From Macrostomum hystrix (lineage: Eukaryota > Animalia > Platyhelminthes): a stretch of 64,000 nt of DNA. Positions 26,871 to 64,000 of the stretch are shown here, piece by piece. Position 1 is the stretch's first letter, and each line of letters starts with the position of its first letter. The translations under genes and the position numbers were made by a program. The stretch covers positions 2,108,001-2,172,000 of the forward strand of contig CATNEN010000038.1 of assembly GCA_950097015.1 (NCBI GenBank). The letters are read 5' to 3'. The notes below the pieces were generated by a model. That model ran no database searches and was not told the origin of the DNA. It was given only the letters and a program-made list of their open reading frames with translations.

Positions 26871-26891
26871 CTAAAAACGTTTTTAGCTTCA

Positions 26892-42325: not shown

Positions 42326-42410
42326 ACGTCCTATTTTCCAGTACCAGTAACAGTACCAGTACCGGAAAAAATAAAAGTTAAAACAAATGGTCGTAACATC
42401 GAAAAATATT

Positions 42411-44349
42411 AATTGCCATGGCTGTAGATGAAGCACGTGCAATTTCAGCTTCCTACAGCATCCAGCGCCGGAGCAGTGGACCCTTAAAGTGCGTCTCCCC
42501 ACCCCAGCCATAGAAGCCTCTGTTACTAAGGTCATGAGGACCCTTATTGCGCCAGCATGACTGGTCAGGGGCAACTAATAACCATCAGAGCATCAATTGC
42601 CATGGCTGTAGATGAAGCACGTGCAATTTCAGCTTCCTACAGCATCCAGCGCCGGAGCAGTGGACCCTTAAAGTGCGTCTCCCCACCCCAGCCATAGAAG
42701 CCTCTGTTACTAAGGTCATGAGGACCCTTATTGCGCCAGCATGACTGGTCAGGGGCAACTAATAACCATCAGAGCATCAATTGCCATGGCTGTAGATGAA
42801 GCACGTGCAATTTCAGCTTCCTACAGCATCCAGCGCCGGAGCAGTGGACCCTTAAAGTGCGTCTCCCCACCCCAGCCATAGAAGCCTCTGTTACTAAGGT
42901 CATGAGGACCCTTATTGCGCCAGCATGACTGGTCAGGGGCAACTAATAACCATCAGAGCATCAATTGCCATGGCTGTAGATGAAGCACGTGCAATTTCAG
43001 CTTCCTACAGCATCCAGCGCCGGAGCAGTGGACCCTTAAAGTGCGTCTCCCCACCCCAGCCATAGAAGCCTCTGTTACTAAGGTCATGAGGACCCTTATT
43101 GCGCCAGCATGACTGGTCAGGGGCAACTAATAACCATCAGAGCATCAATTGCCATGGCTGTAGATGAAGCACGTGCAATTTCAGCTTCCTACAGCATCCA
43201 GCGCCGGAGCAGTGGACCCTTAAAGTGCGTCTCCCCACCCCAGCCATAGAAGCCTCTGTTACTAAGGTCATGAGGACCCTTATTGCGCCAGCATGACTGG
43301 TCAGGGGCAACTAATAACCATCAGAGCATCAATTGCCATGGCTGTAGATGAAGCACGTGCAATTTCAGCTTCCTACAGCATCCAGCGCCGGAGCAGTGGA
43401 CCCTTAAAGTGCGTCTCCCCACCCCAGCCATAGAAGCCTCTGTTACTAAGGTCATGAGGACCCTTATTGCGCCAGCATGACTGGTCAGGGGCAACTAATA
43501 ACCATCAGAGCATCAATTGCCATGGCTGTAGATGAAGCACGTGCAATTTCAGCTTCCTACAGCATCCAGCGCCGGAGCAGTGGACCCTTAAAGTGCGTCT
43601 CCCCACCCCAGCCATAGAAGCCTCTGTTACTAAGGTCATGAGGACCCTTATTGCGCCAGCATGACTGGTCAGGGGCAACTAATAACCATCAGAGCATCAA
43701 TTGCCATGGCTGTAGATGAAGCACGTGCAATTTCAGCTTCCTACAGCATCCAGCGCCGGAGCAGTGGACCCTTAAAGTGCGTCTCCCCACCCCAGCCATA
43801 GAAGCCTCTGTTACTAAGGTCATGAGGACCCTTATTGCGCCAGCATGACTGGTCAGGGGCAACTAATAACCATCAGAGCATCAATTGCCATGGCTGTAGA
43901 TGAAGCACGTGCAATTTCAGCTTCCTACAGCATCCAGCGCCGGAGCAGTGGACCCTTAAAGTGCGTCTCCCCACCCCAGCCATAGAAGCCTCTGTTACTA
44001 AGGTCATGAGGACCCTTATTGCGCCAGCATGACTGGTCAGGGGCAACTAATAACCATCAGAGCATCAATTGCCATGGCTGTAGATGAAGCACGTGCAATT
44101 TCAGCTTCCTACAGCATCCAGCGCCGGAGCAGTGGACCCTTAAAGTGCGTCTCCCCACCCCAGCCATAGAAGCCTCTGTTACTAAGGTCATGAGGACCCT
44201 TATTGCGCCAGCATGACTGGTCAGGGGCAACTAATAACCATCAGAGCATCAATTGCCATGGCTGTAGATGAAGCACGTGCAATTTCAGCTTCCTACAGCA
44301 TCCAGCGCCGGAGCAGTGGACCCTTAAAGTGCGTCTCCCCACCCCAGCC
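42411..44349 (+). repeat. 184-bp satellite array, left arm (about 10.5 copies)
   Basis: AATTGCCATGGCTGTAGATG recurs at 42411, 42595 and onward; copies look identical. Confidence 0.97.
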
Positions 44350-44798
44350 GTATGGCCTTGTGGCAAATTCAGATATGCGCGAATTAGCCAATTTTATAGT
44401 TTCTTTGGCGGCATATCTTAATTGAACAGTGAACATGCATCCTTTTTTAAGCCTCCACGTTGCTTACTCCTCGTCCATTGTTGTGCAGGATTTGCTTTTA
44501 ATTGTTAGGTTTAGTCTCTTTAAACTCCACTGGCGCTGTATTCTTATCCCAGTGTATTACGAGCGTGCCTTCCTAATGCTATTGTTAAGTCTTAAATGGT
44601 TTTAATTTTCTGACAGCTTACTGTACCTGACCTTCGTAATTTACTCCCTTTTAATTGGATGATTGTTGGCCTTCAATTTCACTGGCTATGGTGAGGAGTG
44701 GGGGTTTTCGAGCAGGGCAAATACGCTCGTATAAAGGAACTCAATACTCCGCGCAGTGTCATAAAATATTATCAATAAGGAACCTCACTTGGAACGCC

Positions 44799-47700
44799 AT
44801 GCTTCGAATTTTTGTTGTATCGCTTCTCTTTACCTCCTGCATTGCTTTTAAACGAGGAAAACTTAGCACTGTACATCTATCACCGCTTATTTTTGGTGAA
44901 TATGAAGAATCGGAGCTTTGCTCCTCTTCCTACCACGATCCTAAATCCATATGGGGTCAGATCGTTCTGAAACTTGATTTCAAAAACTCCCTTTTGAATC
45001 GCAAGACTGTCTACGAATACTATCGGCGTCACGCTAGAGGTAAGTTTGGCTTTGCTGATTGCCTTTCATGTACGTGCATGCATATGTACTGCTTGTGAAT
45101 GACGGTCACATCCAGGGGAGTCAAAACACATGTGGCCTAAATGAAAAGAATGACTCAAGATTGTTGCGATCCCATAGAATGTGTCACTAACTCCTTATTG
45201 CTTCAGTACAATCAGCTGTAAAATGAGTACGAGTATGAAGGGTTGCCACCCACAAATCTTTGGACTGAACAACAGTCATTAGATGCGTCGCGTAATCTGC
45301 AGCTGTGCTGTCGGTTGCAAATCTCGCATAGGGGCCAGGTGTAGAACGTTATCGTAATCACTATTATTACTATTAGTCGAACAGGCAATCGACATTAAAA
45401 TTTTCTCTTTAACTGTAATGGGTTGGGATCACTTTCTACTTAAAAGTATACTGTAGAATGGCACCAATGTCAGACAAAGTAAACTGACGTGAACACCACG
45501 AGAAAACTACAAGTTGGCTATCAGCTCATCAGAACATAAATTTATCTGAATACATTGCTGCTTTAATTATCACATGATTTTGGGGCTCTAAGCCTACTTT
45601 ATTATTTTGCACTATAAGGATCCAATTATTTCCAAAATTTTCCTTCCAGAGCAGCAGCGCGCGGCAGGAGCTTCACCTCCAGCAGCAGCTGAGCGCACGG
45701 ATGGAGCGCCAACTCCAGCGGCAGCGGAGCAGCGCGCGGCAGCAGCTCCACCTCCAGCGGCAGCTGGGCGCACGGATGGAGCGCCAACTCCAGCGGCAGC
45801 GGAGCAGCGCGCGGCAGCAGCTCCACCTCCAGCGGCAGCTGGGCGCACGGATGGAGCGCCAACTCCAGCGGCAGCGGAGCAGCCTTTATCAGATGAAGGC
45901 TCTTTTCAGGTGAGCGATCCCACTTCTGACAATCAATCTATCTCGAAGGATTCTGATCACCAATTAAAATTTAACATTTCAATAAGCGGAAAAGAGTGGT
46001 TTGACGGGGCTAGGTTTCATAAAGCAAAAACCTACGTGTTTACAAAGGATTCATCCATGTGGTGGATGTCAACTTTAAGGAAACTATTAGCAAGCATTGA
46101 GGATCATGAAGTATCAGGATGCATTCTAAAATTTAAAAACCGTTACATCAATGATCCTTCTGTTTCAATGCGAGCTAAAAAATACTTCATAAGACAGCTT
46201 GCCCAATGTCAGCATTCAACGTGCAACAAAAAGTTTGAATTTATATTAAAAGCATTGCCAAGAACGGCAAATGTAGATGTTACGCTATCAGTTTCAACAC
46301 AAGGACAGAAAAGGCACGACTTTCCAACTCTAAGTAAAGTTACAGCTGTTGAAGCAGAAAAATTTAAAGAGCTGTTGAAAGAAAAAAGTCCGGCTGAACT
46401 GTATGACGAGCTTTTGGCGTCAATGACAGAAAAAGAGATAGACGAGAATGACTTTTCGCGCGTCAAATCTCTTCCAGCTATTCGGCGAATTAACGCGAAG
46501 CTAGAAGTCAAAGAAGAAGGACGCGTGCACAAAAATGTCATTAAAGAACTTCATATTATGCAAAAAATTATGCGAAATACGGACATTGAAAGTAAATCCA
46601 TAAAAGGCTTCATTCAAAGCTTTGAGTTCGATCCGTTTCTAATAACGTTGTACTCAGAAAAGCAGTTAAACTTACTGGCTGACCGGCCCGGGTGCGTTTT
46701 ACATTTAGATGCGACAGGTGGAGTTCATCGAATCATCGAACATGTAAAAAAGCCATGCCTCATCTACTCGCTGCTTCTACCATCGAAAAGCGGAAACACT
46801 CGCAGCATTCCTATTGCAGAGATGGTTTCTACGATTCAAACAACTCCAAAAATAAGCAATTTTCTGTTTAGTGTCCGCTGTGATCTCGCAAGGCTTATCG
46901 GTCGAAACTCTGTGATGCGAAGGGAATGTTTGCCGGGCATCATTGTCACAGATTTTTCCTGGGCACTGCTGCACTCAGTGTGCCATGCCTTTGGCAGTGA
47001 GTTGGAGAGCTACTTAAATGAAGCTTACAATGCCGTAAAAACCAACACACTGGTTGACCATCCTATACCTTTTGTTTGCACCAATCATGTTATCAAAGCG
47101 TTTATTCGCGGACTAGGTGAAATTCCACAGGCAAAGAATACAGATAAAAGTATGAAGGAAATTCTTGTATCAGCGTTTGTATACCTCATTCATCAGGAGA
47201 CCTTCGCGGGCTTTGAGAGCACCATTAATCTGATTATTGAGGAATTCACGTCTGACCAAAATCTAAAAAAGCTTCGTGAAAGGCTTAAGCAATGGGACAC
47301 ATCTGTGTCGCACGTTTTAGAATCAGAATCTGACCGCACGCCATCTGATGTTGAAGACGAAAGTCTCAGCGAAGATGAAAAAAAAATAACCCAAGAACGC
47401 AAGAAAGCCGATAGAAAAACGATTCGAAACTGCTCGCCATTTATGAAACATTTTTCATATTTGTTAAAATCAGTTAGATCTCCTGCAGAGCATGTAATCG
47501 CGCCTGAATTACTTGAATACCTAATCAAGCACTGGCTTCCACTGGCCCCTCTATTTGCGATGTTTATATGTGAGATAAAAAGTTTTGAAAAGATCGACAG
47601 CTGGTATTCTAATGCTTTTGTGGAGTCGTACTTTCGTGAATTGAAGAAAAATAAAGCCACGAGAAGTTCTCGGCTTAAGATATGTGCATTCACTGAGCAG

Positions 47701-48747
47701 CAATTCCAGTATGTACTACGCCGCGTGAAAGGTTTCTCGATTCTTGCGGACAAACGTGCCCCTAAATTATCCAGTCAAAGAAATGAAGAAAGCGCACAAG
47801 AAGCGAAAGAGCAGTGGGGCAGGAAGCCCACAAGACAGCGAACTAAATATAAGCGACCAAGCTCACCGATTCTAAAGCCCGAGACGACCAAGAAAAAGTC
47901 ACGACATGTAAAACCGCCCCAGAACGAACCAGAATCAAGAGGCAAACCAAAGGAGAGCTTTATTTGGAAGACTACTACGAATGACGTAATCGTAGACTTC
48001 GACAAAGAATCACTACAGCCAAATGCGTGGGTTTCGCTTGGATCAGTCAATGCATTCGTAAATATTCTTTGTGAGAGCAATCCTAGAAGTCACATTCGAC
48101 TCCTAAAGTGCAGCTTTTTCGAACAGCTACTAAGAGACGACAGCGCCGCAGCAGCTCAGAGCCTCTTGGACTGCGCTGACTCAACTGCGACTAAAATTCT
48201 GTGTCCAGTTCTGCTGAACTATCACTACTTTTTAGTTTACGTCAACCTGCAAACCAAGGAATTTTCGCTTCTTGATCCCATGGTGCAAAATGAATCTCGC
48301 CGAACGAATCAGTACCTAGAAGCATGGCAAAAATTTGCAGGCAGTCAAGAAATACAAAATATAATGCCCAGCGCATATGGGCAGTACAAGAAGCGCTCGT
48401 TTCTTCACTCCATGCAAAAGGATTCATACAACTGCGGTGTTTTTGTCTGTCTGTTTGCTAAGATGTTAATTATAGGATCAGCAGCAGGATTTAGCAACTT
48501 AATGATTCCGACCAGCCAGAGGTTTTTTAATGCTGCTCGAAATTACATTTGGAAAACGATTGAAAGCAACTGTCAGAAATTATCGATGGAATCAGACACT
48601 TGCAAAGTATGCAAGGGCAGCACCAGAAGTGAGACATTTTGGATCCAGTGCGATCTCTGTGATGCCTGGATTCACAGTCGATGCGCCGAATCCGAATTAT
48701 TGATTCGTCATCAATCTGGTGCCTTTGTGTCTTGCTGCACTAATTGA
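44799..48747 (+). CDS. NOF/MULE-like DDE transposase fused to a Ulp1 (C48) protease and a PHD finger; exons 44799-45039 and 45650-48747 (about 1112 aa)
   Basis: LHLDATG (D ~46708), IIVTDFSWAL (D ~46951), CTNH (CxxH), SNAFVESYF (E ~47623). PVLLNYHYFLV..LLDPM..QKDSYNCGVFVC. CKVC..WIQCDLCDAWIHSRC. A phase-1 GT-AG intron joins the two exons in frame. Confidence 0.85.
45652..45883 (+). repeat. 75-bp coding repeat, 3 copies (Ala/Pro-rich linker)
   Basis: EQRAAAAPPPAAAGRTDGAPTPAAA units. Confidence 0.85.
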
Positions 48748-49671
48748 TCGAGTCTTCGGCGTTTTGGCTCAGGCCTCAGCACCGCGAGTCACATTCGCTT
48801 TCGTATCAATAGCTTTTCCTAATCAATTTTTAGCTGAAGTGCCACAGATTAAAACCGTTGCATATTGAGTGGTACCATGCTAAACTATACTTAGTAGTAT
48901 ATAGATTCCATTTCTTATGCACAAATGTGTTTTCTTATTTTGCATGCTTGCTCACCAAGAAGGTTGGCTCATCAGTTGTACCTGTATTTTGCCGTTTATT
49001 CGCTGTTTCTCATTCCATTTTTTATGTGTGCATCATATAGCTTCAGTGGTAACAGTTGCTCATTTTGCTTACATCGCTAAAAAACAATTATTTTCGATTT
49101 GGTCTGTATGGGACTCAACTCACCAACAGCTTTGACATTCTCCAGTCATAGCCAACAGATCCCTGACCAAGCATGTGTTGAATGAAAATAGATTATTAGG
49201 CATTAGAGAGGTAGTTTCCAACAAAGAAACTACCATGCTAGTCATAGAAGGTAGCTTTTTATGATAAGCGTAGTCGACTACAATAATGTAAATTCTACTT
49301 AGCAAAAAAAATTTTGGTGAAATATGAAAAATATTATTTTAAAATTTTGTTTTCATTTCAGTTCACAACTAAAAATTAGCAAACTATTTTTAATAATTGT
49401 GTTTAAAACTCAAAGCAGCTATGCTTTGTGATCATAGCATAATACGAATGAAAAACTTTGTGAGTAACTTCGCCAAAGTCGGTCCCAAGCCCGATTTAAA
49501 AAGAAGGAGGGTGCACATATGCCTAATTTACTGCACTAAACGAATCCAATAATTAACTCTGCCAACAAAATACTTCAAAACCCTTCTGCACCAGTAACAA
49601 ACCTTCAGAACCCTGTCACATCTTTGTCCCGGCATTTTCAACGAACCTTTCACACGTTTTAAAGGGTCGTC

Positions 49672-52600
49672 ATGGCTGGGGTGGGGAGACGCACTTTAAG
49701 GGTCCACTGCTCCGGCGCTGGATGCTGTAGGAAGCTGAAATTGCACGTGCTTCATCTACAGCCATGGCAATTGATGCTCTGATGGTTATTAGTTGCCCCT
49801 GACCAGTCATGCTGGCGCAATAAGGGTCCTCATGACCTTAGTAACAGAGGCTTCTATGGCTGGGGTGGGGAGACGCACTTTAAGGGTCCACTGCTCCGGC
49901 GCTGGATGCTGTAGGAAGCTGAAATTGCACGTGCTTCATCTACAGCCATGGCAATTGATGCTCTGATGGTTATTAGTTGCCCCTGACCAGTCATGCTGGC
50001 GCAATAAGGGTCCTCATGACCTTAGTAACAGAGGCTTCTATGGCTGGGGTGGGGAGACGCACTTTAAGGGTCCACTGCTCCGGCGCTGGATGCTGTAGGA
50101 AGCTGAAATTGCACGTGCTTCATCTACAGCCATGGCAATTGATGCTCTGATGGTTATTAGTTGCCCCTGACCAGTCATGCTGGCGCAATAAGGGTCCTCA
50201 TGACCTTAGTAACAGAGGCTTCTATGGCTGGGGTGGGGAGACGCACTTTAAGGGTCCACTGCTCCGGCGCTGGATGCTGTAGGAAGCTGAAATTGCACGT
50301 GCTTCATCTACAGCCATGGCAATTGATGCTCTGATGGTTATTAGTTGCCCCTGACCAGTCATGCTGGCGCAATAAGGGTCCTCATGACCTTAGTAACAGA
50401 GGCTTCTATGGCTGGGGTGGGGAGACGCACTTTAAGGGTCCACTGCTCCGGCGCTGGATGCTGTAGGAAGCTGAAATTGCACGTGCTTCATCTACAGCCA
50501 TGGCAATTGATGCTCTGATGGTTATTAGTTGCCCCTGACCAGTCATGCTGGCGCAATAAGGGTCCTCATGACCTTAGTAACAGAGGCTTCTATGGCTGGG
50601 GTGGGGAGACGCACTTTAAGGGTCCACTGCTCCGGCGCTGGATGCTGTAGGAAGCTGAAATTGCACGTGCTTCATCTACAGCCATGGCAATTGATGCTCT
50701 GATGGTTATTAGTTGCCCCTGACCAGTCATGCTGGCGCAATAAGGGTCCTCATGACCTTAGTAACAGAGGCTTCTATGGCTGGGGTGGGGAGACGCACTT
50801 TAAGGGTCCACTGCTCCGGCGCTGGATGCTGTAGGAAGCTGAAATTGCACGTGCTTCATCTACAGCCATGGCAATTGATGCTCTGATGGTTATTAGTTGC
50901 CCCTGACCAGTCATGCTGGCGCAATAAGGGTCCTCATGACCTTAGTAACAGAGGCTTCTATGGCTGGGGTGGGGAGACGCACTTTAAGGGTCCACTGCTC
51001 CGGCGCTGGATGCTGTAGGAAGCTGAAATTGCACGTGCTTCATCTACAGCCATGGCAATTGATGCTCTGATGGTTATTAGTTGCCCCTGACCAGTCATGC
51101 TGGCGCAATAAGGGTCCTCATGACCTTAGTAACAGAGGCTTCTATGGCTGGGGTGGGGAGACGCACTTTAAGGGTCCACTGCTCCGGCGCTGGATGCTGT
51201 AGGAAGCTGAAATTGCACGTGCTTCATCTACAGCCATGGCAATTGATGCTCTGATGGTTATTAGTTGCCCCTGACCAGTCATGCTGGCGCAATAAGGGTC
51301 CTCATGACCTTAGTAACAGAGGCTTCTATGGCTGGGGTGGGGAGACGCACTTTAAGGGTCCACTGCTCCGGCGCTGGATGCTGTAGGAAGCTGAAATTGC
51401 ACGTGCTTCATCTACAGCCATGGCAATTGATGCTCTGATGGTTATTAGTTGCCCCTGACCAGTCATGCTGGCGCAATAAGGGTCCTCATGACCTTAGTAA
51501 CAGAGGCTTCTATGGCTGGGGTGGGGAGACGCACTTTAAGGGTCCACTGCTCCGGCGCTGGATGCTGTAGGAAGCTGAAATTGCACGTGCTTCATCTACA
51601 GCCATGGCAATTGATGCTCTGATGGTTATTAGTTGCCCCTGACCAGTCATGCTGGCGCAATAAGGGTCCTCATGACCTTAGTAACAGAGGCTTCTATGGC
51701 TGGGGTGGGGAGACGCACTTTAAGGGTCCACTGCTCCGGCGCTGGATGCTGTAGGAAGCTGAAATTGCACGTGCTTCATCTACAGCCATGGCAATTGATG
51801 CTCTGATGGTTATTAGTTGCCCCTGACCAGTCATGCTGGCGCAATAAGGGTCCTCATGACCTTAGTAACAGAGGCTTCTATGGCTGGGGTGGGGAGACGC
51901 ACTTTAAGGGTCCACTGCTCCGGCGCTGGATGCTGTAGGAAGCTGAAATTGCACGTGCTTCATCTACAGCCATGGCAATTGATGCTCTGATGGTTATTAG
52001 TTGCCCCTGACCAGTCATGCTGGCGCAATAAGGGTCCTCATGACCTTAGTAACAGAGGCTTCTATGGCTGGGGTGGGGAGACGCACTTTAAGGGTCCACT
52101 GCTCCGGCGCTGGATGCTGTAGGAAGCTGAAATTGCACGTGCTTCATCTACAGCCATGGCAATTGATGCTCTGATGGTTATTAGTTGCCCCTGACCAGTC
52201 ATGCTGGCGCAATAAGGGTCCTCATGACCTTAGTAACAGAGGCTTCTATGGCTGGGGTGGGGAGACGCACTTTAAGGGTCCACTGCTCCGGCGCTGGATG
52301 CTGTAGGAAGCTGAAATTGCACGTGCTTCATCTACAGCCATGGCAATTGATGCTCTGATGGTTATTAGTTGCCCCTGACCAGTCATGCTGGCGCAATAAG
52401 GGTCCTCATGACCTTAGTAACAGAGGCTTCTATGGCTGGGGTGGGGAGACGCACTTTAAGGGTCCACTGCTCCGGCGCTGGATGCTGTAGGAAGCTGAAA
52501 TTGCACGTGCTTCATCTACAGCCATGGCAATTGATGCTCTGATGGTTATTAGTTGCCCCTGACCAGTCATGCTGGCGCAATAAGGGTCCTCATGACCTTA

Positions 52601-55600
52601 GTAACAGAGGCTTCTATGGCTGGGGTGGGGAGACGCACTTTAAGGGTCCACTGCTCCGGCGCTGGATGCTGTAGGAAGCTGAAATTGCACGTGCTTCATC
52701 TACAGCCATGGCAATTGATGCTCTGATGGTTATTAGTTGCCCCTGACCAGTCATGCTGGCGCAATAAGGGTCCTCATGACCTTAGTAACAGAGGCTTCTA
52801 TGGCTGGGGTGGGGAGACGCACTTTAAGGGTCCACTGCTCCGGCGCTGGATGCTGTAGGAAGCTGAAATTGCACGTGCTTCATCTACAGCCATGGCAATT
52901 GATGCTCTGATGGTTATTAGTTGCCCCTGACCAGTCATGCTGGCGCAATAAGGGTCCTCATGACCTTAGTAACAGAGGCTTCTATGGCTGGGGTGGGGAG
53001 ACGCACTTTAAGGGTCCACTGCTCCGGCGCTGGATGCTGTAGGAAGCTGAAATTGCACGTGCTTCATCTACAGCCATGGCAATTGATGCTCTGATGGTTA
53101 TTAGTTGCCCCTGACCAGTCATGCTGGCGCAATAAGGGTCCTCATGACCTTAGTAACAGAGGCTTCTATGGCTGGGGTGGGGAGACGCACTTTAAGGGTC
53201 CACTGCTCCGGCGCTGGATGCTGTAGGAAGCTGAAATTGCACGTGCTTCATCTACAGCCATGGCAATTGATGCTCTGATGGTTATTAGTTGCCCCTGACC
53301 AGTCATGCTGGCGCAATAAGGGTCCTCATGACCTTAGTAACAGAGGCTTCTATGGCTGGGGTGGGGAGACGCACTTTAAGGGTCCACTGCTCCGGCGCTG
53401 GATGCTGTAGGAAGCTGAAATTGCACGTGCTTCATCTACAGCCATGGCAATTGATGCTCTGATGGTTATTAGTTGCCCCTGACCAGTCATGCTGGCGCAA
53501 TAAGGGTCCTCATGACCTTAGTAACAGAGGCTTCTATGGCTGGGGTGGGGAGACGCACTTTAAGGGTCCACTGCTCCGGCGCTGGATGCTGTAGGAAGCT
53601 GAAATTGCACGTGCTTCATCTACAGCCATGGCAATTGATGCTCTGATGGTTATTAGTTGCCCCTGACCAGTCATGCTGGCGCAATAAGGGTCCTCATGAC
53701 CTTAGTAACAGAGGCTTCTATGGCTGGGGTGGGGAGACGCACTTTAAGGGTCCACTGCTCCGGCGCTGGATGCTGTAGGAAGCTGAAATTGCACGTGCTT
53801 CATCTACAGCCATGGCAATTGATGCTCTGATGGTTATTAGTTGCCCCTGACCAGTCATGCTGGCGCAATAAGGGTCCCTCATGACCTTAGTAACAGAGGC
53901 TTCTATGGCTGGGGTGGGGAGACGCACTTTAAGGGTCCACTTGCTCCGGCGCTGGATGCTGTAGGAAGCTGAAATTGCACGTGCTTCATCTACAGCCATG
54001 GCAATTGATGCTCTGATGGTTATTAGTTGCCCCTGACCAGTCATGCTGGCGCAATAAGGGTCCTCATGACCTTAGTAACAGAGGCTTCTATGGCTGGGGT
54101 GGGGAGACGCACTTTAAGGGTCCACTGCTCCGGCGCTGGATGCTGTAGGAAGCTGAAATTGCACGTGCTTCATCTACAGCCATGGCAATTGATGCTCTGA
54201 TGGTTATTAGTTGCCCCTGACCAGTCATGCTGGCGCAATAAGGGTCCTCATGACCTTAGTAACAGAGGCTTCTATGGCTGGGGTGGGGAGACGCACTTTA
54301 AGGGTCCACTGCTCCGGCGCTGGATGCTGTAGGAAGCTGAAATTGCACGTGCTTCATCTACAGCCATGGCAATTGATGCTCTGATGGTTATTAGTTGCCC
54401 CTGACCAGTCATGCTGGCGCAATAAGGGTCCTCATGACCTTAGTAACAGAGGCTTCTATGGCTGGGGTGGGGAGACGCACTTTAAGGGTCCACTGCTCCG
54501 GCGCTGGATGCTGTAGGAAGCTGAAATTGCACGTGCTTCATCTACAGCCATGGCAATTGATGCTCTGATGGTTATTAGTTGCCCCTGACCAGTCATGCTG
54601 GCGCAATAAAGGGTCCTCATGACCTTAGTAACAGAGGCTTCTATGGCTGGGGTGGGGAGACGCACTTTAAGGGTCCACTGCTCCGGCGCTGGATGCTGTA
54701 GGAAGCTGAAATTGCACGTGCTTCATCTACAGCCATGGCAATTGATGCTCTGATGGTTATTAGTTGCCCCTGACCAGTCATGCTGGCGCAATAAGGGTCC
54801 TCATGACCTTAGTAACAGAGGCTTCTATGGCTGGGGTGGGGAAGACGCACTTTAAGGGTCCACTGCTCCGGCGCTGGATGCTGTAGGAAGCTGAAATTGC
54901 ACGTGCTTCATCTACAGCCATGGCAATTGATGCTCTGATGGTTATTAGTTGCCCCTGACCAGTCATGCTGGCGCAATAAGGGTCCTCATGACCTTAGTAA
55001 CAGAGGCTTCTATGGCTGGGGTGGGGAGACGCACTTTAAGGGTCCACTGCTCCGGCGCTGGATGCTGTAGGAAGCTGAAATTGCACGTGCTTCATCTACA
55101 GCCATGGCAATTGATGCTCTGATGGTTATTAGTTGCCCCTGACCAGTCATGCTGGCGCAATAAGGGTCCTCATGACCTTAGTAACAGAGGCTTCTATGGC
55201 TGGGGTGGGGAGACGCACTTTAAGGGTCCACTGCTCCGGCGCTGGATGCTGTAGGAAGCTGAAATTGCACGTGCTTCATCTACAGCCATGGCAATTGATG
55301 CTCTGATGGTTATTAGTTGCCCCTGACCAGTCATGCTGGCGCAATAAGGGTCCTCATGACCTTAGTAACAGAGGCTTCTATGGCTGGGGTGGGGAGACGC
55401 ACTTTAAGGGTCCACTGCTCCGGCGCTGGATGCTGTAGGAAGCTGAAATTGCACGTGCTTCATCTACAGCCATGGCAATTGATGCTCTGATGGTTATTAG
55501 TTGCCCCTGACCAGTCATGCTGGCGCAATAAGGGTCCTCATGACCTTAGTAACAGAGGCTTCTATGGCTGGGGTGGGGAGACGCACTTTAAGGGTCCACT

Positions 55601-58600
55601 GCTCCGGCGCTGGATGCTGTAGGAAGCTGAAATTGCACGTGCTTCATCTACAGCCATGGCAATTGATGCTCTGATGGTTATTAGTTGCCCCTGACCAGTC
55701 ATGCTGGCGCAATAAGGGTCCTCATGACCTTAGTAACAGAGGCTTCTATGGCTGGGGTGGGGAGACGCACTTTAAGGGTCCACTGCTCCGGCGCTGGATG
55801 CTGTAGGAAGCTGAAATTGCACGTGCTTCATCTACAGCCATGGCAATTGATGCTCTGATGGTTATTAGTTGCCCCTGACCAGTCATGCTGGCGCAATAAG
55901 GGTCCTCATGACCTTAGTAACAGAGGCTTCTATGGCTGGGGTGGGGAGACGCACTTTAAGGGTCCACTGCTCCGGCGCTGGATGCTGTAGGAAGCTGAAA
56001 TTGCACGTGCTTCATCTACAGCCATGGCAATTGATGCTCTGATGGTTATTAGTTGCCCCTGACCAGTCATGCTGGCGCAATAAGGGTCCTCATGACCTTA
56101 GTAACAGAGGCTTCTATGGCTGGGGTGGGGAGACGCACTTTAAGGGTCCACTGCTCCGGCGCTGGATGCTGTAGGAAGCTGAAATTGCACGTGCTTCATC
56201 TACAGCCATGGCAATTGATGCTCTGATGGTTATTAGTTGCCCCTGACCAGTCATGCTGGCGCAATAAGGGTCCTCATGACCTTAGTAACAGAGGCTTCTA
56301 TGGCTGGGGTGGGGAGACGCACTTTAAGGGTCCACTGCTCCGGCGCTGGATGCTGTAGGAAGCTGAAATTGCACGTGCTTCATCTACAGCCATGGCAATT
56401 GATGCTCTGATGGTTATTAGTTGCCCCTGACCAGTCATGCTGGCGCAATAAGGGTCCTCATGACCTTAGTAACAGAGGCTTCTATGGCTGGGGTGGGGAG
56501 ACGCACTTTAAGGGTCCACTGCTCCGGCGCTGGATGCTGTAGGAAGCTGAAATTGCACGTGCTTCATCTACAGCCATGGCAATTGATGCTCTGATGGTTA
56601 TTAGTTGCCCCTGACCAGTCATGCTGGCGCAATAAGGGTCCTCATGACCTTAGTAACAGAGGCTTCTATGGCTGGGGTGGGGAGACGCACTTTAAGGGTC
56701 CACTGCTCCGGCGCTGGATGCTGTAGGAAGCTGAAATTGCACGTGCTTCATCTACAGCCATGGCAATTGATGCTCTGATGGTTATTAGTTGCCCCTGACC
56801 AGTCATGCTGGCGCAATAAGGGTCCTCATGACCTTAGTAACAGAGGCTTCTATGGCTGGGGTGGGGAGACGCACTTTAAGGGTCCACTGCTCCGGCGCTG
56901 GATGCTGTAGGAAGCTGAAATTGCACGTGCTTCATCTACAGCCATGGCAATTGATGCTCTGATGGTTATTAGTTGCCCCTGACCAGTCATGCTGGCGCAA
57001 TAAGGGTCCTCATGACCTTAGTAACAGAGGCTTCTATGGCTGGGGTGGGGAGACGCACTTTAAGGGTCCACTGCTCCGGCGCTGGATGCTGTAGGAAGCT
57101 GAAATTGCACGTGCTTCATCTACAGCCATGGCAATTGATGCTCTGATGGTTATTAGTTGCCCCTGACCAGTCATGCTGGCGCAATAAGGGTCCTCATGAC
57201 CTTAGTAACAGAGGCTTCTATGGCTGGGGTGGGGAGACGCACTTTAAGGGTCCACTGCTCCGGCGCTGGATGCTGTAGGAAGCTGAAATTGCACGTGCTT
57301 CATCTACAGCCATGGCAATTGATGCTCTGATGGTTATTAGTTGCCCCTGACCAGTCATGCTGGCGCAATAAGGGTCCTCATGACCTTAGTAACAGAGGCT
57401 TCTATGGCTGGGGTGGGGAGACGCACTTTAAGGGTCCACTGCTCCGGCGCTGGATGCTGTAGGAAGCTGAAATTGCACGTGCTTCATCTACAGCCATGGC
57501 AATTGATGCTCTGATGGTTATTAGTTGCCCCTGACCAGTCATGCTGGCGCAATAAGGGTCCTCATGACCTTAGTAACAGAGGCTTCTATGGCTGGGGTGG
57601 GGAGACGCACTTTAAGGGTCCACTGCTCCGGCGCTGGATGCTGTAGGAAGCTGAAATTGCACGTGCTTCATCTACAGCCATGGCAATTGATGCTCTGATG
57701 GTTATTAGTTGCCCCTGACCAGTCATGCTGGCGCAATAAGGGTCCTCATGACCTTAGTAACAGAGGCTTCTATGGCTGGGGTGGGGAGACGCACTTTAAG
57801 GGTCCACTGCTCCGGCGCTGGATGCTGTAGGAAGCTGAAATTGCACGTGCTTCATCTACAGCCATGGCAATTGATGCTCTGATGGTTATTAGTTGCCCCT
57901 GACCAGTCATGCTGGCGCAATAAGGGTCCTCATGACCTTAGTAACAGAGGCTTCTATGGCTGGGGTGGGGAGACGCACTTTAAGGGTCCACTGCTCCGGC
58001 GCTGGATGCTGTAGGAAGCTGAAATTGCACGTGCTTCATCTACAGCCATGGCAATTGATGCTCTGATGGTTATTAGTTGCCCCTGACCAGTCATGCTGGC
58101 GCAATAAGGGTCCTCATGACCTTAGTAACAGAGGCTTCTATGGCTGGGGTGGGGAGACGCACTTTAAGGGTCCACTGCTCCGGCGCTGGATGCTGTAGGA
58201 AGCTGAAATTGCACGTGCTTCATCTACAGCCATGGCAATTGATGCTCTGATGGTTATTAGTTGCCCCTGACCAGTCATGCTGGCGCAATAAGGGTCCTCA
58301 TGACCTTAGTAACAGAGGCTTCTATGGCTGGGGTGGGGAGACGCACTTTAAGGGTCCACTGCTCCGGCGCTGGATGCTGTAGGAAGCTGAAATTGCACGT
58401 GCTTCATCTACAGCCATGGCAATTGATGCTCTGATGGTTATTAGTTGCCCCTGACCAGTCATGCTGGCGCAATAAGGGTCCTCATGACCTTAGTAACAGA
58501 GGCTTCTATGGCTGGGGTGGGGAGACGCACTTTAAGGGTCCACTGCTCCGGCGCTGGATGCTGTAGGAAGCTGAAATTGCACGTGCTTCATCTACAGCCA

Positions 58601-61600
58601 TGGCAATTGATGCTCTGATGGTTATTAGTTGCCCCTGACCAGTCATGCTGGCGCAATAAGGGTCCTCATGACCTTAGTAACAGAGGCTTCTATGGCTGGG
58701 GTGGGGAGACGCACTTTAAGGGTCCACTGCTCCGGCGCTGGATGCTGTAGGAAGCTGAAATTGCACGTGCTTCATCTACAGCCATGGCAATTGATGCTCT
58801 GATGGTTATTAGTTGCCCCTGACCAGTCATGCTGGCGCAATAAGGGTCCTCATGACCTTAGTAACAGAGGCTTCTATGGCTGGGGTGGGGAGACGCACTT
58901 TAAGGGTCCACTGCTCCGGCGCTGGATGCTGTAGGAAGCTGAAATTGCACGTGCTTCATCTACAGCCATGGCAATTGATGCTCTGATGGTTATTAGTTGC
59001 CCCTGACCAGTCATGCTGGCGCAATAAGGGTCCTCATGACCTTAGTAACAGAGGCTTCTATGGCTGGGGTGGGGAGACGCACTTTAAGGGTCCACTGCTC
59101 CGGCGCTGGATGCTGTAGGAAGCTGAAATTGCACGTGCTTCATCTACAGCCATGGCAATTGATGCTCTGATGGTTATTAGTTGCCCCCTGACCAGTCATG
59201 CTGGCGCAATAAGGGTCCTCATGACCTTAGTAACAGAGGCTTCTATGGCTGGGGTGGGGAGACGCACTTTAAGGGTCCACTGCTCCGGCGCTGGATGCTG
59301 TAGGAAGCTGAAATTGCACGTGCTTCATCTACAGCCATGGCAATTGATGCTCTGATGGTTATTAGTTGCCCCTGACCAGTCATGCTGGCGCAATAAGGGT
59401 CCTCATGACCTTAGTAACAGAGGCTTCTATGGCTGGGGTGGGGAGACGCACTTTAAGGGTTCCACTGCTCCGGCGCTGGATGCTGTAGGAAGCTGAAATT
59501 GCACGTGCTTCATCTACAGCCATGGCAATTGATGCTCTGATGGTTATTAGTTGCCCCTGACCAGTCATGCTGGCGCAATAAGGGTCCTCATGACCTTAGT
59601 AACAGAGGCTTCTATGGCTGGGGTGGGGAGACGCACTTTAAGGGTCCACTGCTCCGGCGCTGGATGCTGTAGGAAGCTGAAATTGCACGTGCTTCATCTA
59701 CAGCCATGGCAATTGATGCTCTGATGGTTATTAGTTGCCCCTGACCAGTCATGCTGGCGCAATAAGGGTCCTCATGACCTTAGTAACAGAGGCTTCTATG
59801 GCTGGGGTGGGGAGACGCACTTTAAGGGTCCACTGCTCCGGCGCTGGATGCTGTAGGAAGCTGAAATTGCACGTGCTTCATCTACAGCCATGGCAATTGA
59901 TGCTCTGATGGTTATTAGTTGCCCCTGACCAGTCATGCTGGCGCAATAAGGGTCCTCATGACCTTAGTAACAGAGGCTTCTATGGCTGGGGTGGGGAGAC
60001 GCACTTTAAGGGTCCACTGCTCCGGCGCTGGATGCTGTAGGAAGCTGAAATTGCACGTGCTTCATCTACAGCCATGGCAATTGATGCTCTGATGGTTATT
60101 AGTTGCCCCTGACCAGTCATGCTGGCGCAATAAGGGTCCTCATGACCTTAGTAACAGAGGCTTCTATGGCTGGGGTGGGGAGACGCACTTTAAGGGTCCA
60201 CTGCTCCGGCGCTGGATGCTGTAGGAAGCTGAAATTGCACGTGCTTCATCTACAGCCATGGCAATTGATGCTCTGATGGTTATTAGTTGCCCCTGACCAG
60301 TCATGCTGGCGCAATAAGGGTCCTCATGACCTTAGTAACAGAGGCTTCTATGGCTGGGGGTGGGGAGACGCACTTTAAGGGTCCACTGCTCCGGCGCTGG
60401 ATGCTGTAGGAAGCTGAAATTGCACGTGCTTCATCTACAGCCATGGCAATTGATGCTCTGATGGTTATTAGTTGCCCCTGACCAGTCATGCTGGCGCAAT
60501 AAGGGTCCTCATGACCTTAGTAACAGAGGCTTCTATGGCTGGGGTGGGGAGACGCACTTTAAGGGTCCACTGCTCCGGCGCTGGATGCTGTAGGAAGCTG
60601 AAATTGCACGTGCTTCATCTACAGCCATGGCAATTGATGCTCTGATGGTTATTAGTTGCCCCTGACCAGTCATGCTGGCGCAATAAGGGTCCTCATGACC
60701 TTAGTAACAGAGGCTTCTATGGCTGGGGTGGGGAGACGCACTTTAAGGGTCCACTGCTCCGGCGCTGGATGCTGTAGGAAGCTGAAATTGCAACGTGCTT
60801 CATCTACAGCCATGGCAATTGATGCTCTGATGGTTATTAGTTGCCCCTGACCAGTCATGCTGGCGCAATAAGGGTCCTCATGACCTTAGTAACAGAGGCT
60901 TCTATGGCTGGGGTGGGGAGACGCACTTTAAGGGTCCACTGCTCCGGCGCTGGATGCTGTAGGAAGCTGAAATTGCACGTGCTTCATCTACAGCCATGGC
61001 AATTGATGCTCTGATGGTTATTAGTTGCCCCTGACCAGTCATGCTGGCGCAATAAGGGTCCTCATGACCTTAGTAACAGAGGCTTCTATGGCTGGGGTGG
61101 GGAGACGCACTTTAAGGGTCCACTGCTCCGGCGCTGGATGCTGTAGGAAGCTGAAATTGCACGTGCTTCATCTACAGCCATGGCAATTGATGCTCTGATG
61201 GTTATTAGTTGCCCCTGACCAGTCATGCTGGCGCAATAAGGGTCCTCATGACCTTAGTAACAGAGGCTTCTATGGCTGGGGTGGGGAGACGCACTTTAAG
61301 GGTCCACTGCTCCGGCGCTGGATGCTGTAGGAAGCTGAAATTGCACGTGCTTCATCTACAGCCATGGCAATTGATGCTCTGATGGTTATTAGTTGCCCCT
61401 GACCAGTCATGCTGGCGCAATAAGGGTCCTCATGACCTTAGTAACAGAGGCTTCTATGGCTGGGGTGGGGAGACGCACTTTAAGGGTCCACTGCTCCGGC
61501 GCTGGATGCTGTAGGAAGCTGAAATTGCACGTGCTTCATCTACAGCCATGGCAATTGATGCTCTGATGGTTATTAGTTGCCCCTGACCAGTCATGCTGGC

Positions 61601-61740
61601 GCAATAAGGGTCCTCATGACCTTAGTAACAGAGGCTTCTATGGCTGGGGTGGGGAGACGCACTTTAAGGGTCCACTGCTCCGGCGCTGGATGCTGTAGGA
61701 AGCTGAAATTGCACGTGCTTCATCTACAGCCATGGCAATT
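49672..61740 (-). repeat. 184-bp satellite array, right arm, inverted relative to the left arm (about 65.5 copies)
   Basis: Reverse complement of the left-arm monomer; the only variants noticed are rare 1-bp insertions. Confidence 0.97.
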
Positions 61741-61825
61741 AATATTTTTCGATGTTACGACCATTTGTTTTAACTTTTATTTTTTCCGGTACTGGTACTG
61801 TTACTGGTACTGGAAAATAGGACGT

Positions 61826-61950
61826 TGTGCTGAAGTGCTTGGTCTTGGTGCTGCTGTTGTTGCGCCGTCTTCTACTGCATTGTTTGGCCTTGCTGTTGCT
61901 CGTCGAGCTGCTTTAGTCAAGCGACTTAAAAAACTTTTCTTAGGTGGCAT
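61826..61950 (-). pseudogene. Detached N-terminus of the Helitron ORF
   Basis: MPPKKSFLSRLTKAARR...PRPSTSAQ joins in frame to PQAASSENEAE at 42317 once the insert and one TSD copy are removed. Confidence 0.85.
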
Positions 61951-63229
61951 CTGAAAGTTAGAAGTAGTCCGAATGACAGGGGACCTGTGTTGAAAAATCT
62001 TTCTCTTCTCTTCAGTGGGAGAGGCTAAGCCTCTGTATATTTTAGCAAAGCACTGTACGCCAGCCTCTCTCTTTCTTCTATCCCAGGCTGGCTGGAGAGA
62101 AATATCGACCGGAGAGCCCTGCGCACTGGGACGCCACCGCACTCACCGCACTCAGTCTCAGTGCTGCTTGGGGGCCAGTAGACAGTCTAGGGGTTTGGGC
62201 TGTGTACATTCACGGCTTGAAATACAATGTACAGTCTGGGGCTTCGGCGCCCGGGGAAGGGAGGGGGTGGCTGTAATAAAATTTGGCCCGCAGAGTGGCG
62301 GAGGGGAGTTGGGGTGGCTGTCCTCGGAAAACAAAAAGTGACTCACTTTGAGATGATGCAGCTTTGCTCTGGATTGAGTAGAGATGTTCAAAATTGACAG
62401 CATTGTTGGAAAACATGTAAAGTGTAAGTGGATCAAATTAGGAGAAAATCTGACAAAGTGGGGCGACGATATGTCGAATTGAGTGATTTTTTGACGATTT
62501 TTGAGCAGTTTTTTGCACTTTTGAGCAGGAAGGAAATGATTTTTCGGGAATTTGAGTAGCCTATTGCACTCAGCGTAGGTGGTTTTAGGTATGTGCAAAG
62601 TTTGGTGCGATTTGGTTGAGCGGTTTCGGCGTCTATAAAGACAAAAGGTTGCACACAGACAGACAGACAGACAGAGTTTTCACTTTTATATATATAGATT
62701 TCTGAAATAACTAAAGAAAGCATCTAACTGAAGAATTAACATTGCATGTCTTCAAAGACAGTCACTGAGAAGCTTGTATTGAGCAGTTTAGTTAAATTAA
62801 AAAGCAACGTTGGTTAGAACCTGAGGAGAAGGACATTTCCAGACAGCTCAGCAGATTAATCATAATCCCGCGCAATTCAGGAAGACAAAGCGGCGAAGGG
62901 CTCTGAACACATTTCTGAGCACATTTCTGAGCACATTTTTGAGGCCGCCGGCCGGCCCCAAACCCCATGGGCAAAATCTCCCAAAGCCAATCTGGCAGTT
63001 TGATAATCCGCGTCTCACACAATGTCGATGTTGTCGCTAACTGTGACCGCTAGATTCAGTCTTTAATCTTTTATTTATAACAATTTTTAATTTTCGAATT
63101 GCACGCATGCCTGTTCGTGATTAAAAAATGCTTCTTACGCTACTTAACTAAGTAGCTTGGCAATTTTCGCGACTTTTCATTGTTTGATATTACTTGATTG
63201 CATCCGCCCCAGTTGGGCCAGATGTGTAG

Positions 63230-63947: not shown

Positions 63948-64000
63948 TGAGACAGGAGAAATGAGACAGGAGAGATGAGACAGGAGAGATGAGACAGGAG
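63948..64000 (+). repeat. 13-14 bp tandem repeat running off the window edge
   Basis: ATGAGACAGGAGA(G) copies. Confidence 0.85.

Follow-up and report, generated by a model that had tools for sequence, protein, structure and literature searches.

The 19.5-kb element described here, from the flatworm Macrostomum hystrix, is a real and very recently inserted cut-and-paste transposon of a known kind, the Foldback/NOF-Rehavkus kind. It lies within a window of 64,000 nucleotides (contig CATNEN010000038.1, positions 2,108,001 to 2,172,000), which is the whole stretch of DNA analysed and to which all coordinates refer. Taken together, the observations are very probably explained by a young, complete, Foldback-type class II element of a NOF/Rehavkus-like branch related to Mutator, which inserted once and whose arms subsequently grew.

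The general organisation of the element is set out in Table 1. At its left boundary, GGC TGTGCTGA on the outside meets ACGTCCTATTTTCC on the inside, and at its right boundary GGAAAATAGGACGT is followed outside by TGTGCTGA AGT. Tandem Repeats Finder places the two arrays, which are in mutually inverted orientation, at 42411-44349 (184 bp x 10.5, 100% matches) and 49672-61740 (184 bp x 65.5, 99% matches), with an ambiguity of 2-3 nt in the placement of the core-arm junctions. The left array stops at about monomer position 102, where the core begins. Read inward from the ends, the arms are identical for 1033 nt, until the first one-base indel in the long arm. Substitutions are absent from all of the approximately 76 monomers, and the long arm departs from uniformity only by eight unique one-base homopolymer extensions spread over seven monomers, as is typical of errors left in a long-read consensus. 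Comparison of cap and monomer found no significant common motif. The initial annotation had described perfect 85-bp terminal inverted repeats, opposed 184-bp arrays of about 10 and 65 copies, a core of about 5.3 kb with one gene, and a flanking duplication, and this description holds throughout: as assembled, the arms comprise 10.55 and 65.6 copies, the core of about 5.32 kb contains a single long open frame, and the duplication is an 8-bp sequence present on both sides and single at empty sites. Chance can be excluded as the origin of this arrangement because cap, monomer, and core all recur at other loci.

Table 1. Features of the element and its insertion site (positions in the window)
Feature	Position	Strand	Remarks
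Host repeat, downstream part	40847..42325	-	Continuation of the minus-strand open frame split by the insertion
Target-site duplication, left 8-bp copy	42318..42325	.	TGTGCTGA; from end sequence; single copy in paralogous empty sites
Left 85-bp terminal cap	42326..42410	+	Starts ACGTCCTATTTTCCAGTACC; outer end of the terminal inverted repeat, not tandemly repeated
Left arm, 10.55 copies of 184-bp monomer	42411..44352	+	Copies all identical; Tandem Repeats Finder
Core, ~5.3 kb	44353..49669	+	Three near-identical genome copies
Candidate first coding exon	44799..45095	+	ATG at 44799, 99-codon frame; homology to sister-family protein N-terminus
Main open frame	45592..48747	+	1051 codons stop to stop; predicted transposase, C48 protease and PHD finger
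Coding minisatellite	45653..45883	+	75 bp (25 aa, Ala/Pro-rich), 3.1 copies
Predicted N-terminal zinc-finger beta-sheet domain	46120..46317	+	C172, C201-x4-C206, H237; WRKY/GCM1-like, weak fold match
Predicted DDE/RNase-H-like transposase catalytic domain	46519..47763	+	Includes an insertion domain
Predicted Ulp1/SENP-type cysteine protease (Peptidase_C48)	47995..48510	+	His873, Asp890, Gln937, Cys943 in place
Predicted C-terminal PHD-type zinc finger	48589..48699	+	C999-x2-C-x12-C-x2-C-x4-H-x2-C...CC
Right arm, 65.6 inverted copies of the left arm's 184-bp monomer	49670..61740	-	Tandem Repeats Finder
Right 85-bp terminal cap	61741..61825	-	Perfect inverted copy of the left cap
Target-site duplication, right 8-bp copy	61826..61833	.	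TGTGCTGA
Host repeat, upstream part	61834..61950	-	Start of the interrupted open frame, MPPKKSFLSRL...

The insertion site shows that the element entered another multicopy repeat once, with an 8-bp staggered cut. At least 20 copies of this host repeat, 91-99% identical, are present, and many of them run uninterrupted across the insertion site. The repeat carries an open frame that begins with an ATG at 61950 on the minus strand, and its downstream part contains a 69-bp tandem repeat (41430-42161). In alignments with at least five paralogous host repeats that represent empty sites, the flanks of the element overlap by exactly 8 bp. As these paralogues are contiguous, with a single TGTGCTGA, one insertion event must have occurred.

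The element belongs to a family that is mobile. A genome-wide search with the cap returned 22 matches (86-100% identity), so that the cap is not confined to this locus, and besides the 19.5-kb element there are six further convergent cap pairs, spanning 0.7-7.1 kb. Four cap pairs are bounded by different perfect 8-bp duplications (TGTGCTGA, AATGTTTA, AATACTGG, and CAAAATAA); the initial annotation had proposed a search for such paired caps with distinct duplications. A full, 7-kb copy (C10) has no target-site duplication. Another copy (C14, locus L035) is 1458 bp long and consists of arms only, with no core, and it folds into a perfect hairpin stem of about 690 bp. The core occurs three times in the genome, and the copy at this locus is 99.7-100% identical to those in C10 and C29, with the open frame 100% identical in all three. 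Elsewhere in the family the arms contain 0.4-5.5 monomers, including in the two copies with an identical open frame. Copies differ in their tandem-repeat counts, the coding 75-bp repeat included, and hardly in point substitutions. The 19.5-kb element is structurally complete, and it is very young, since the three open frames are identical, the cores nearly so, and the monomers here are free of substitutions.

The core gene is predicted to encode an N-terminal zinc finger and a DDE transposase fused to a Ulp1/SENP-like protease and a PHD finger, with all catalytic residues present. Residue numbering of the protein starts at 45607, and the main open frame has no in-frame ATG ahead of 46057 (codon 150). 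A candidate first exon is suggested by a tblastn match between residues 6-91 of a sister-family protein and positions 44784-45044 (37.5% identity, E = 1e-8). Because this exon is in a different frame from the main one, an intron of roughly 0.5 kb would separate the two; an upstream exon is assumed here. The coding minisatellite that follows has two extra copies in the C10 element and seven extra in the C29 element. The zinc-finger residues C172, C201, C206, and H237 are invariant or nearly so across the clade. The same is true, among 42 clade members, for the DDE, CxxH, and N...E columns of the putative catalytic domain, whose motifs fall at D368 (46708), D449 (46951), C491-x2-H494 (47077-47088), and E673 (47623), and for which a confident structure model matches DDE transposases. 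The protease is supported by Pfam PF02902 (E = 2.3e-6, above the gathering score) and by alignment to SENP2 (1tgz). The C-terminal finger scores 22.4 bits against PF00628 (E = 1.3e-4), just below the 24-bit cut-off, and PHD structures 1we9 and 5yc3 match it at E of about 1e-4 with the C4HC3 pattern. A PHD finger was found in 9 of 42 clade relatives (best 3e-8).

The main grounds for placing the element in a superfamily are the homologue with a NOF name, the PHD finger, and a WRKY-like fold match, which is weak. The nearest named relative of the core protein is an aphid ‘Protein in NOF-FB transposable element’ (P0003), which matches its N-terminal part with E = 1.4e-6 database-wide and 4e-18 pairwise. 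The alignment has 23% identity over 667 columns and brings the D, D, CxxH, and E motifs and the C48 domain into register. The gene appears intact and related to this NOF-FB protein, in keeping with the ‘autonomous-looking’ character ascribed to the element in the initial annotation. The Foldback-type identity proposed there is likewise upheld by the terminal cap, the variable-number tandem monomers, and a real target-site duplication. The long inverted termini are composed of tandem subrepeats that vary from 0.4 to 65.6 monomers across copies, and hairpin-forming, arms-only copies exist beside coding ones (C14 and the three copies with a 5.3-kb core, respectively). Of the traits of Rehavkus and MULE-NOF elements, the PHD finger and the combination of a subterminal tandem satellite with long inverted termini are present. 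The 9-bp duplication of FB and Rehavkus elements is not matched; duplications in this family are of 8 bp, and for this reason the element is labelled NOF/Rehavkus-like rather than a proven member. The Pfam MULE domain PF10551 was absent from the core protein at E <= 1 and from 42 relatives at E <= 0.01, in line with the treatment of Rehavkus as an outgroup to MULEs in published work (PMC6446971, PMC13359780).

Foldback ends can also arise outside the Mutator lineage. Galileo, for example, is a P element with foldback ends. The M. hystrix element could similarly be a foldback-shaped member of the P or hAT groups, outside the NOF/Rehavkus lineage, and a fold search with the catalytic domain did return IS256-family and P-element transposases as tied. 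However, the likeness to P transposase is common to IS256 and Hermes as well, and no THAP, BED, or hAT-dimerisation domain was matched in Pfam at E <= 1. THAP is also absent from the fold matches of the N-terminal domain, the best of which, albeit weak, are WRKY and AFT2. The sole named homologue is NOF-FB, the language-model neighbours of the core protein are mostly MULE clusters, and one of 42 relatives weakly matches the MULE-related PF21056 (0.009). In addition, a PHD finger is listed among the traits of Rehavkus (PMC6446971), and duplications in Mutator-type foldback elements measure 8-10 bp (PMC4079207, PMC3169594). A P or hAT affiliation is therefore very unlikely.

The same genome contains a sister foldback family (loci L026-L033), in which 5-8.7-kb inverted arms of a 170-bp monomer occur at at least eight loci. 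The two families encode proteins of the same architecture, 39% identical, and in both the N-terminal part of the gene contains a coding minisatellite and the multi-kb arms are built of a nucleosome-sized monomer. Their monomers, in contrast, show no significant similarity, and the sister gene is one uninterrupted frame, whereas the candidate first exon of the 184-bp family is out of frame. Many sister copies are long-armed, while the 184-bp family has one such copy. Long arms are thus normal for this clade in M. hystrix.

Whether the 184-bp monomer can be regarded as a satellite depends on its occurrence outside the element. An exact-pattern census found 112 monomer sites in the genome (none in the control), 77 of them in the 19.5-kb element alone. 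All 100 sites listed of the 112 lie inside cap-bearing elements. Among these 100, every array ends in caps, which is the arrangement that the initial annotation had proposed to look for, and there are no free arrays, so that the family does not form a satellite in the strict sense of stand-alone arrays. For the same reason, the suggested dispersal of satellite finds no support, with no cap-less array among those 100 sites. Transport of about 14 kb of satellite by the element, as claimed in the initial annotation, is also unsupported, given that other copies carry just 0.4-5.5 monomers per arm. This range is the reason for concluding that both arms, of 10.5 and 65.6 copies, most likely expanded once the element had inserted, and that the long arm of about 12 kb probably arose by growth in place.

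There are two other ways in which the long arm could be explained. The element might already have measured about 19.5 kb, with some 76 monomers, when it transposed, carrying about 14 kb of satellite with it. The duplication and the empty sites show that whatever lay between the caps arrived as one unit, and the sister family, with its 5-8.7-kb arms at many loci, suggests that giant elements can move. Nevertheless, there is no second long-armed copy that could have been the donor; the other copies have short arms, even the two with an identical open frame; and more than two-thirds of the monomer sites belong to this single element. Repeat counts, including those of the coding 75-bp repeat, differ between otherwise identical copies, which demonstrates rapid change in place. 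Transposition at full length is thus unlikely, although it retains some weight. Alternatively, the 12-kb right arm could be an over-extended or misjoined array, with the real element resembling the 7-kb C10 copy. Assembly is difficult across so many identical monomers, the eight unpolished homopolymer indels indicate that short-read polishing did not reach the arm, and the arm exceeds the span of public contigs. On the other hand, the assembly was built from PacBio long reads with canu (PMC10468722), and output of such an array requires reads containing it. The indels are unique to individual monomers, which fits a real long-read consensus and not a copied block, and the array keeps its register throughout before ending in the correct cap, duplication, and host flank. 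Multi-kb arms were also assembled independently at the sister-family loci. The figure of 65.6 copies is an assembled length, and the public runs are available as k-mer contigs that break at repeat borders. Word depths from these contigs, which are rough figures that carry the tool's own warning against such use, are approximately 6,300-10,400 for the monomer, 272 for the three-copy core, and 1,594 for the host repeat (roughly 15-20 copies). On this rough scale the reads would contain about 70-115 monomers, and the assembly has 112 sites. An artefact is accordingly rather improbable.

The following mechanism is proposed. The transposase would recognise the caps, and probably sites in the monomers too, excise the element, and paste it elsewhere; it would also act in trans to move copies that are deleted or reduced to arms. 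The arrays themselves would gain or lose monomers by unequal exchange, replication slippage, or repair, with no change at their junctions to the cap and the core. The monomer phase at which the arrays meet the core is always the same. One arm of the 19.5-kb copy would have reached about 12 kb in this manner, most likely after insertion. A more speculative and unlikely proposal is that the element itself generates satellite. Excision and gap repair, for example, or processing of the arm hairpins, would alter monomer number in each round, and through its SENP-like protease and PHD tail the transposase would be able to act on the chromatin of nucleosome-sized monomers. If true, the 65-copy arm would be transposase-driven satellite birth caught in the act, in a still-autonomous element.

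Several published systems resemble the element in part. Drosophila FB elements have arms of short repeats and a 9-bp duplication. FB and FB-NOF elements share with the present family variable-number tandem-repeat arms, arms-only copies, and a homologous transposase region, and the aphid NOF-FB protein also ends in a Peptidase_C48 domain. They differ in having short repeats and 9-bp duplications instead of a 184-bp monomer and 8 bp, and transposase identity to NOF-FB is just about 23%. Muta1 of Aedes aegypti is a Mutator-superfamily ‘type 2 foldback’ element in which a larger number of subterminal repeats has been shown by experiment to give stronger transposase binding and higher excision frequency (PMC5499845), while Tm1 of Meloidogyne has both MITE-like and transposase-bearing members with 8-10-bp duplications (PMC3169594). 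Both have Mutator-superfamily inverted repeats with variable-number subterminal tandem repeats. However, these are 12-15 bp long and not nucleosome-sized, and the transposases contain FLYWCH and the Pfam MULE domain, which the core protein does not match, with no protease or PHD tail.

Closer parallels exist for the arms. In Tetris (and DAIBAM) of Drosophila virilis and D. americana, a terminal domain is followed by variable tandem repeats of about 220 bp, duplications are 8-10 bp, and the monomers also build kb-sized satellite-like arrays (PMC4079207). The foldback inverted repeats are thus of similar design, but Tetris has no known autonomous copy or transposase, in contrast to the three identical copies of an apparently intact gene in M. 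hystrix. The monomer of Tetris has 37 bp in common with its terminal domain, while cap and monomer share nothing significant here. Its monomers also occur as free arrays, in contrast to the 100 monomer sites listed of 112 in M. hystrix.

Rehavkus elements are characterised by a PHD finger, a 9-bp duplication (based on few Repbase entries), and a subterminal (mini)satellite (PMC6446971, Table 1). In Tribolium castaneum and T. freemani, the arms of Rehavkus-1_TC, Rehavkus-3_TC, and Rehavkus-like elements contain 2-12, 6-8, or up to 50 satellite-type monomers and can exceed 11 kb; monomers and core evolve in concert, the elements are seen as both generating and carrying satellite DNA, and the 80.5-kb satellite array TCsat12 derives from them (10.1101/2024.12.02.626372 = PMC12581902). 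The M. hystrix element is similar in its long inverted termini of variable-number satellite-type monomers, single open frame, and PHD finger, as judged from published descriptions of Rehavkus. It differs in its 8-bp duplication, where 9 bp is listed, and in its flatworm host, known Rehavkus hosts being arthropods and annelids. Furthermore, TCsat12 is a free array, whereas the long array here is still within an intact, duplication-bounded element. The novelty implied by the initial annotation was therefore overstated, since foldback arms of approximately 150-220-bp monomers that grow into satellite have been published for both Tetris (PMC4079207) and Rehavkus (10.1101/2024.12.02.626372). The 19.5-kb element is a clean new example of this route from transposon end to satellite, not a new kind of element, and its new aspects are its lineage, its flatworm host, and its duplication of 8 bp.

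The element is a Foldback-type transposon, as the initial annotation had proposed. Inverted caps, arms of tandem monomers, a duplication at its borders and a transposase with NOF-type homology all support this identity. The two 184-bp arrays lie in mutually inverted orientation, and the arms, compared inward from the ends, are identical over 1033 nt. At the 5.3-kb core, both arrays break off in the same monomer phase, at approximately position 101–102. When the arms are walked monomer by monomer, the short left arm has no deviation from the monomer, and the long right arm has only eight single-base insertions, located in seven monomers. Every insertion is unique and either extends a homopolymer run or duplicates one base; the approximately 76 monomers of the element contain no substitutions. 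These insertions bear the mark of residual long-read consensus error, not of sequence divergence. The genome was assembled with canu from PacBio reads, with Arrow and Pilon used for polishing (Wiberg et al. 2023; PMC10468722), and homopolymer errors left uncorrected in an array of perfect repeats fit that procedure. The structure described in the initial annotation is confirmed throughout, save for the precise number of monomers in the long arm. A motif common to cap and monomer, sought by analogy with the Drosophila element Tetris, was rejected because the two share a single 8-mer, about what chance gives.

Features of the window and of two sister-family elements (window positions unless a contig of the same assembly is named)
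Feature	Position	Strand	Details
Mariner/Tc1-type transposase frame	12699-13763	+	HTH_48, Transposase_1, DDE_3
Minisatellite, 30 bp	19429-20163		24.5 copies
Exon, SH2 domain and start of tyrosine-kinase domain	20156-21181	+	partly overlapped by 21-bp tandem repeat, 20698-20936
Minisatellite, 31 bp	22249-23265		32.7 copies
Minisatellite, 21 bp	24326-26016		80 copies
Minisatellite, 16 bp	27384-28615		77 copies
Minisatellite, 14 bp	35290-36489		86 copies; GC skew +0.80
Minisatellite, 14 bp	36726-37890		83 copies; GC skew -0.64
Host repeat	40847-42325 and 61834-64000		interrupted by the element
Tandem repeat in host repeat, 69 bp	41430-42161		10.6 copies
8-bp duplication, TGTGCTGA	42318-42325 and 61826-61833		immediately outside each cap
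Left cap	42326-42410		85 bp
Left array, 184-bp unit	42411-44349		10.5 copies; 100% matches
Main open frame	45592-48747		residues numbered from 45607
Coding repeat, 75 bp	45653-45883		3.1 copies
Right array, 184-bp unit	49672-61740		65.5 copies; 99% matches
Right cap	61741-61825		85 bp; perfect reverse complement of left cap
Sister element, contig C38	3595940-3601549 / gene / 3606995-3615667	+ / gene / -	170-bp arrays
Sister element, contig C25	7149583-7157741 / gene / 7169719-7178217	+ / gene / -	170-bp arrays

The flanks of the element belong to another multicopy repeat, of which there are at least 20 copies at 91–99% identity. In many of them, the left-flank match overlaps the right-flank match by exactly 8 bp. 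Three such empty sites, aligned with both junctions, read ...GTGGC TGTGCTGA GGTGCTTGG..., with TGTGCTGA present once only. This shows that the element arrived in one insertion event, which duplicated 8 bp. The insertion splits a minus-strand open frame of the host repeat, whose ATG lies at 61950, and a Pfam search of the pieces of this frame within the window returned no domain. The host repeat itself (loci L053–L057) is young and multicopy, and it contains a tandem repeat of its own.

Elsewhere in the window, a dense run of unrelated minisatellites occupies 19429-37890, and an exon with an SH2 domain lies within it. The two 14-bp arrays of opposite GC skew were considered as a second foldback element and rejected, as they have no common inverted repeat. 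A mariner/Tc1-type transposase frame lies further to the left.

The core gene certainly encodes a DDE transposase that contains an insertion domain; the superfamily is not fixed by fold alone. Residues 110–790 have no Pfam match. Among 5.8 billion proteins, their best named relative is the Aphis craccivora ‘Protein in NOF-FB transposable element’ (667 columns, pairwise E = 4e-18). RepeatMasker's class MULE-NOF corresponds to the Rehavkus of Repbase. At E <= 0.001, an exhaustive HMMER search returned 909 relatives, of which 246 pass E <= 1e-10. The closest one outside the M. hystrix genome is only about 31% identical. The named relatives belong to a sea cucumber, where the protein is annotated as a PHD-type zinc-finger protein, and to a mussel, an aphid and a rotifer. 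Across 42 aligned clade members, the invariant or near-invariant columns are D368-A-T-G, D449-x-S, C491-x-x-H494 and N669...E673...K680, together with the N-terminal C172, C201-x4-C206 and H237. The AlphaFold model of residues 110–790 is confident (pLDDT 80.6, pTM 0.68). Foldseek places the IS256-family ISCth4 transposase first, followed by RAG1 and Hermes, and the fold search does not separate IS256/Mutator from P. The N-terminal domain has a weak WRKY-like fold match.

Two further domains follow in the main frame. A Peptidase_C48 domain exceeds the Pfam cut-off (E = 2.3e-6), and its alignment to SENP2 retains His873, Asp890, Gln937 and Cys943; the aphid protein also ends in a C48 domain. A C-terminal PHD-type finger scores 22.4 bits against a Pfam cut-off of 24, and PHD structures match it at E ~1e-4. 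Among the 42 clade members, Pfam detects PHD in nine, C48 in four and one weak match to the MULE-related PF21056, while the Pfam MULE domain is found in none. The Pfam search for MULE, FLYWCH, THAP and hAT domains likewise returned none.

No ATG precedes codon 150 in the main frame, though conservation with relatives starts at about residue 120. Residues 6–91 of the sister-family protein match 44784-45044 in a different frame (37.5% identity, E = 1e-8); within this region lies an ATG, at 44799. Taken together, these observations point to a candidate first exon starting at 44799 and a putative intron of about 0.5 kb. Each of the two candidate exons was searched on its own.

The caps match 22 places in the genome. 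Besides the focal copy, there are six convergent cap pairs, spanning 0.7 to 7.1 kb. Perfect 8-bp duplications of unrelated sequence bound four pairs, the focal one included (TGTGCTGA, AATGTTTA, AATACTGG and CAAAATAA). Among the rest are a pair with an imperfect duplication, a degenerate pair and the 7.1-kb copy on contig C10, which lacks a duplication. The copy on contig C14 consists of arms only, with 3.8 and 3.2 monomers, and as a single strand folds into a perfect hairpin of about 690 bp. The focal, C10 and C29 copies have ORFs that are 100% identical and cores that are 99.7–100% identical. Their arms carry 3.55, 4.55, 5.55, 10.55 and 65.6 monomers, with almost no point differences. These copies show that the family is mobile, with autonomous-looking, deleted and arms-only members, that it has been active recently, and that its tandem counts change fast. 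The 25-aa, Ala/Pro-rich coding repeat near the transposase N-terminus, in the same place in all three copies, is longer by two units on C10 (~5 copies) and by seven on C29 (~10 copies). As it varies between otherwise identical elements, the repeat instability of the family reaches into the protein.

The C10 copy (L036, G000:C10:2682759-2691889) is a full copy of 7131 bp with intact caps, flanked by CACTTCAT and TTGGCAAC. Its missing duplication could have resulted from a rearrangement involving two copies. An inversion between them would leave reciprocal flanks, and none were found among the other ends of the family. The C29 copy (L040, L050 and L051; G000:C29:6946000-6971699) has been hit by later insertions in cap and core. 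Nucleotides 1–24 and 19–85 of its cap lie about 5.2 kb apart, with 6 bp repeated at the break. About 8.8 kb interrupts its core after position 4953, with 4 bp repeated, and the core breaks off a second time after position 5051.

The 184-bp monomer is not a free satellite. An exact-pattern search of the genome (26-mer, <=2 mismatches) counted 112 monomer sites, compared with none for the reversed pattern, and 77 of the 112 belong to the focal element alone. All 100 sites listed, of the 112 counted, sit inside cap-bearing elements, and among the matches listed in a similarity search, monomers adjoin caps only. The expectation that monomer arrays are bounded by caps is therefore borne out for these sites, and the proposal that the element disperses satellite DNA is not shown by them.

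The same genome contains a sister family, whose proteins are 39% identical to the focal protein and are encoded at many loci by open frames of 1373–1748 codons. Each gene is followed by a 170-bp array with a 340-bp higher-order unit. Genome-wide, these arrays form inverted pairs of 5–8.7 kb around the gene, and the family includes a small arms-only copy. The N-terminal part of the gene contains long coding minisatellites (33 bp x 25–36 and 15 bp x 13–45). Homology between the 184- and 170-bp monomers, suggested by blocks in a MAFFT alignment, was rejected: the scored local alignment reached 20, and shuffled controls had a mean of 17 and a maximum of 24.

The long arm exceeds the arms of its sister copies more than ten-fold. 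Because all sister copies of the focal family have short arms, we think that the arms reached their 10.5 and 65.6 copies after insertion. The initial annotation held instead that the element moved about 14 kb of satellite with it, which is possible but not supported. The long arm is unlikely to be a product of assembly. The assembly comprises 220,453,370 bases in 42 contigs (longest 35,345,953, N50 13,505,968; PMC10468722), and multi-kilobase monomer arms are the rule for the clade within it, which speaks against a one-off misassembly of the focal arm. Logan k-mer contigs from four public runs, which end at every repeat border, recover the host repeat in its empty-site form and cap insertion sites elsewhere. 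None bridges the junctions of the focal locus, and, being unable to size an array, they neither support nor refute the assembled arm. The monomer has a word depth of about 6,300–10,400, the three-copy core one of 272 and the host repeat (~15–20 copies) one of 1,594. These suggest some 70–115 monomers, compatible with the 112 assembled, a rough check of little weight given that depth is unreliable here.

The element most likely works by cut-and-paste transposition with turnover of monomers in its arms. Through its zinc finger, the transposase would bind the caps and perhaps also the monomers, and it would cut and paste the element by DDE chemistry. Monomers may be gained or lost by unequal exchange, slippage or repair within the array, while the cap and core junctions stay fixed. 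In Muta1, a foldback element of the Mutator superfamily, more subterminal repeats raise transposase binding and excision (PMC5499845). A similar effect would explain why subterminal repeats are retained.

The papers searched contain no description of foldback elements in Macrostomum, and a full repeat account was outside the scope of the M. hystrix genome paper (PMC10468722). The element is of an expected kind and no surprise to specialists, and it is an attractive model for studying how arrays grow inside a living transposon. The link between foldback elements and satellites gains an unusually clean specimen, bounded by a duplication, with empty sites, three identical ORFs and substitution-free monomers. 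Clean bounds, an apparently intact gene, identical copies and one enlarged arm make the rate and mechanism of array growth directly measurable, and in a laboratory animal. The NOF/Rehavkus-like clade is also extended to flatworms, and the relatives in sea cucumber, mussel, aphid and rotifer show that its range exceeds the ‘arthropods and annelids’ of a 2019 survey.

Members of the Rehavkus group, which is used as the outgroup to MULEs, are described as having one ORF, a PHD finger, a minisatellite, 9-bp duplications and arthropod and annelid hosts (PMC6446971, PMC13359780). The focal element resembles them in architecture, PHD finger and NOF homology, and differs in its 8-bp duplication and flatworm host. 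In Tribolium, Rehavkus carries satellite monomers in its inverted termini, up to 50 per arm, with arms over 11 kb, and one such repeat has expanded to an 80.5-kb satellite (10.1101/2024.12.02.626372). In Drosophila virilis, the foldback element Tetris has monomers of about 220 bp in its inverted repeats and duplications of 8–10 bp; its monomer also forms satellite-like arrays, and no transposase is known for it (PMC4079207). The focal element, in contrast to Tetris, has an apparently intact transposase gene.
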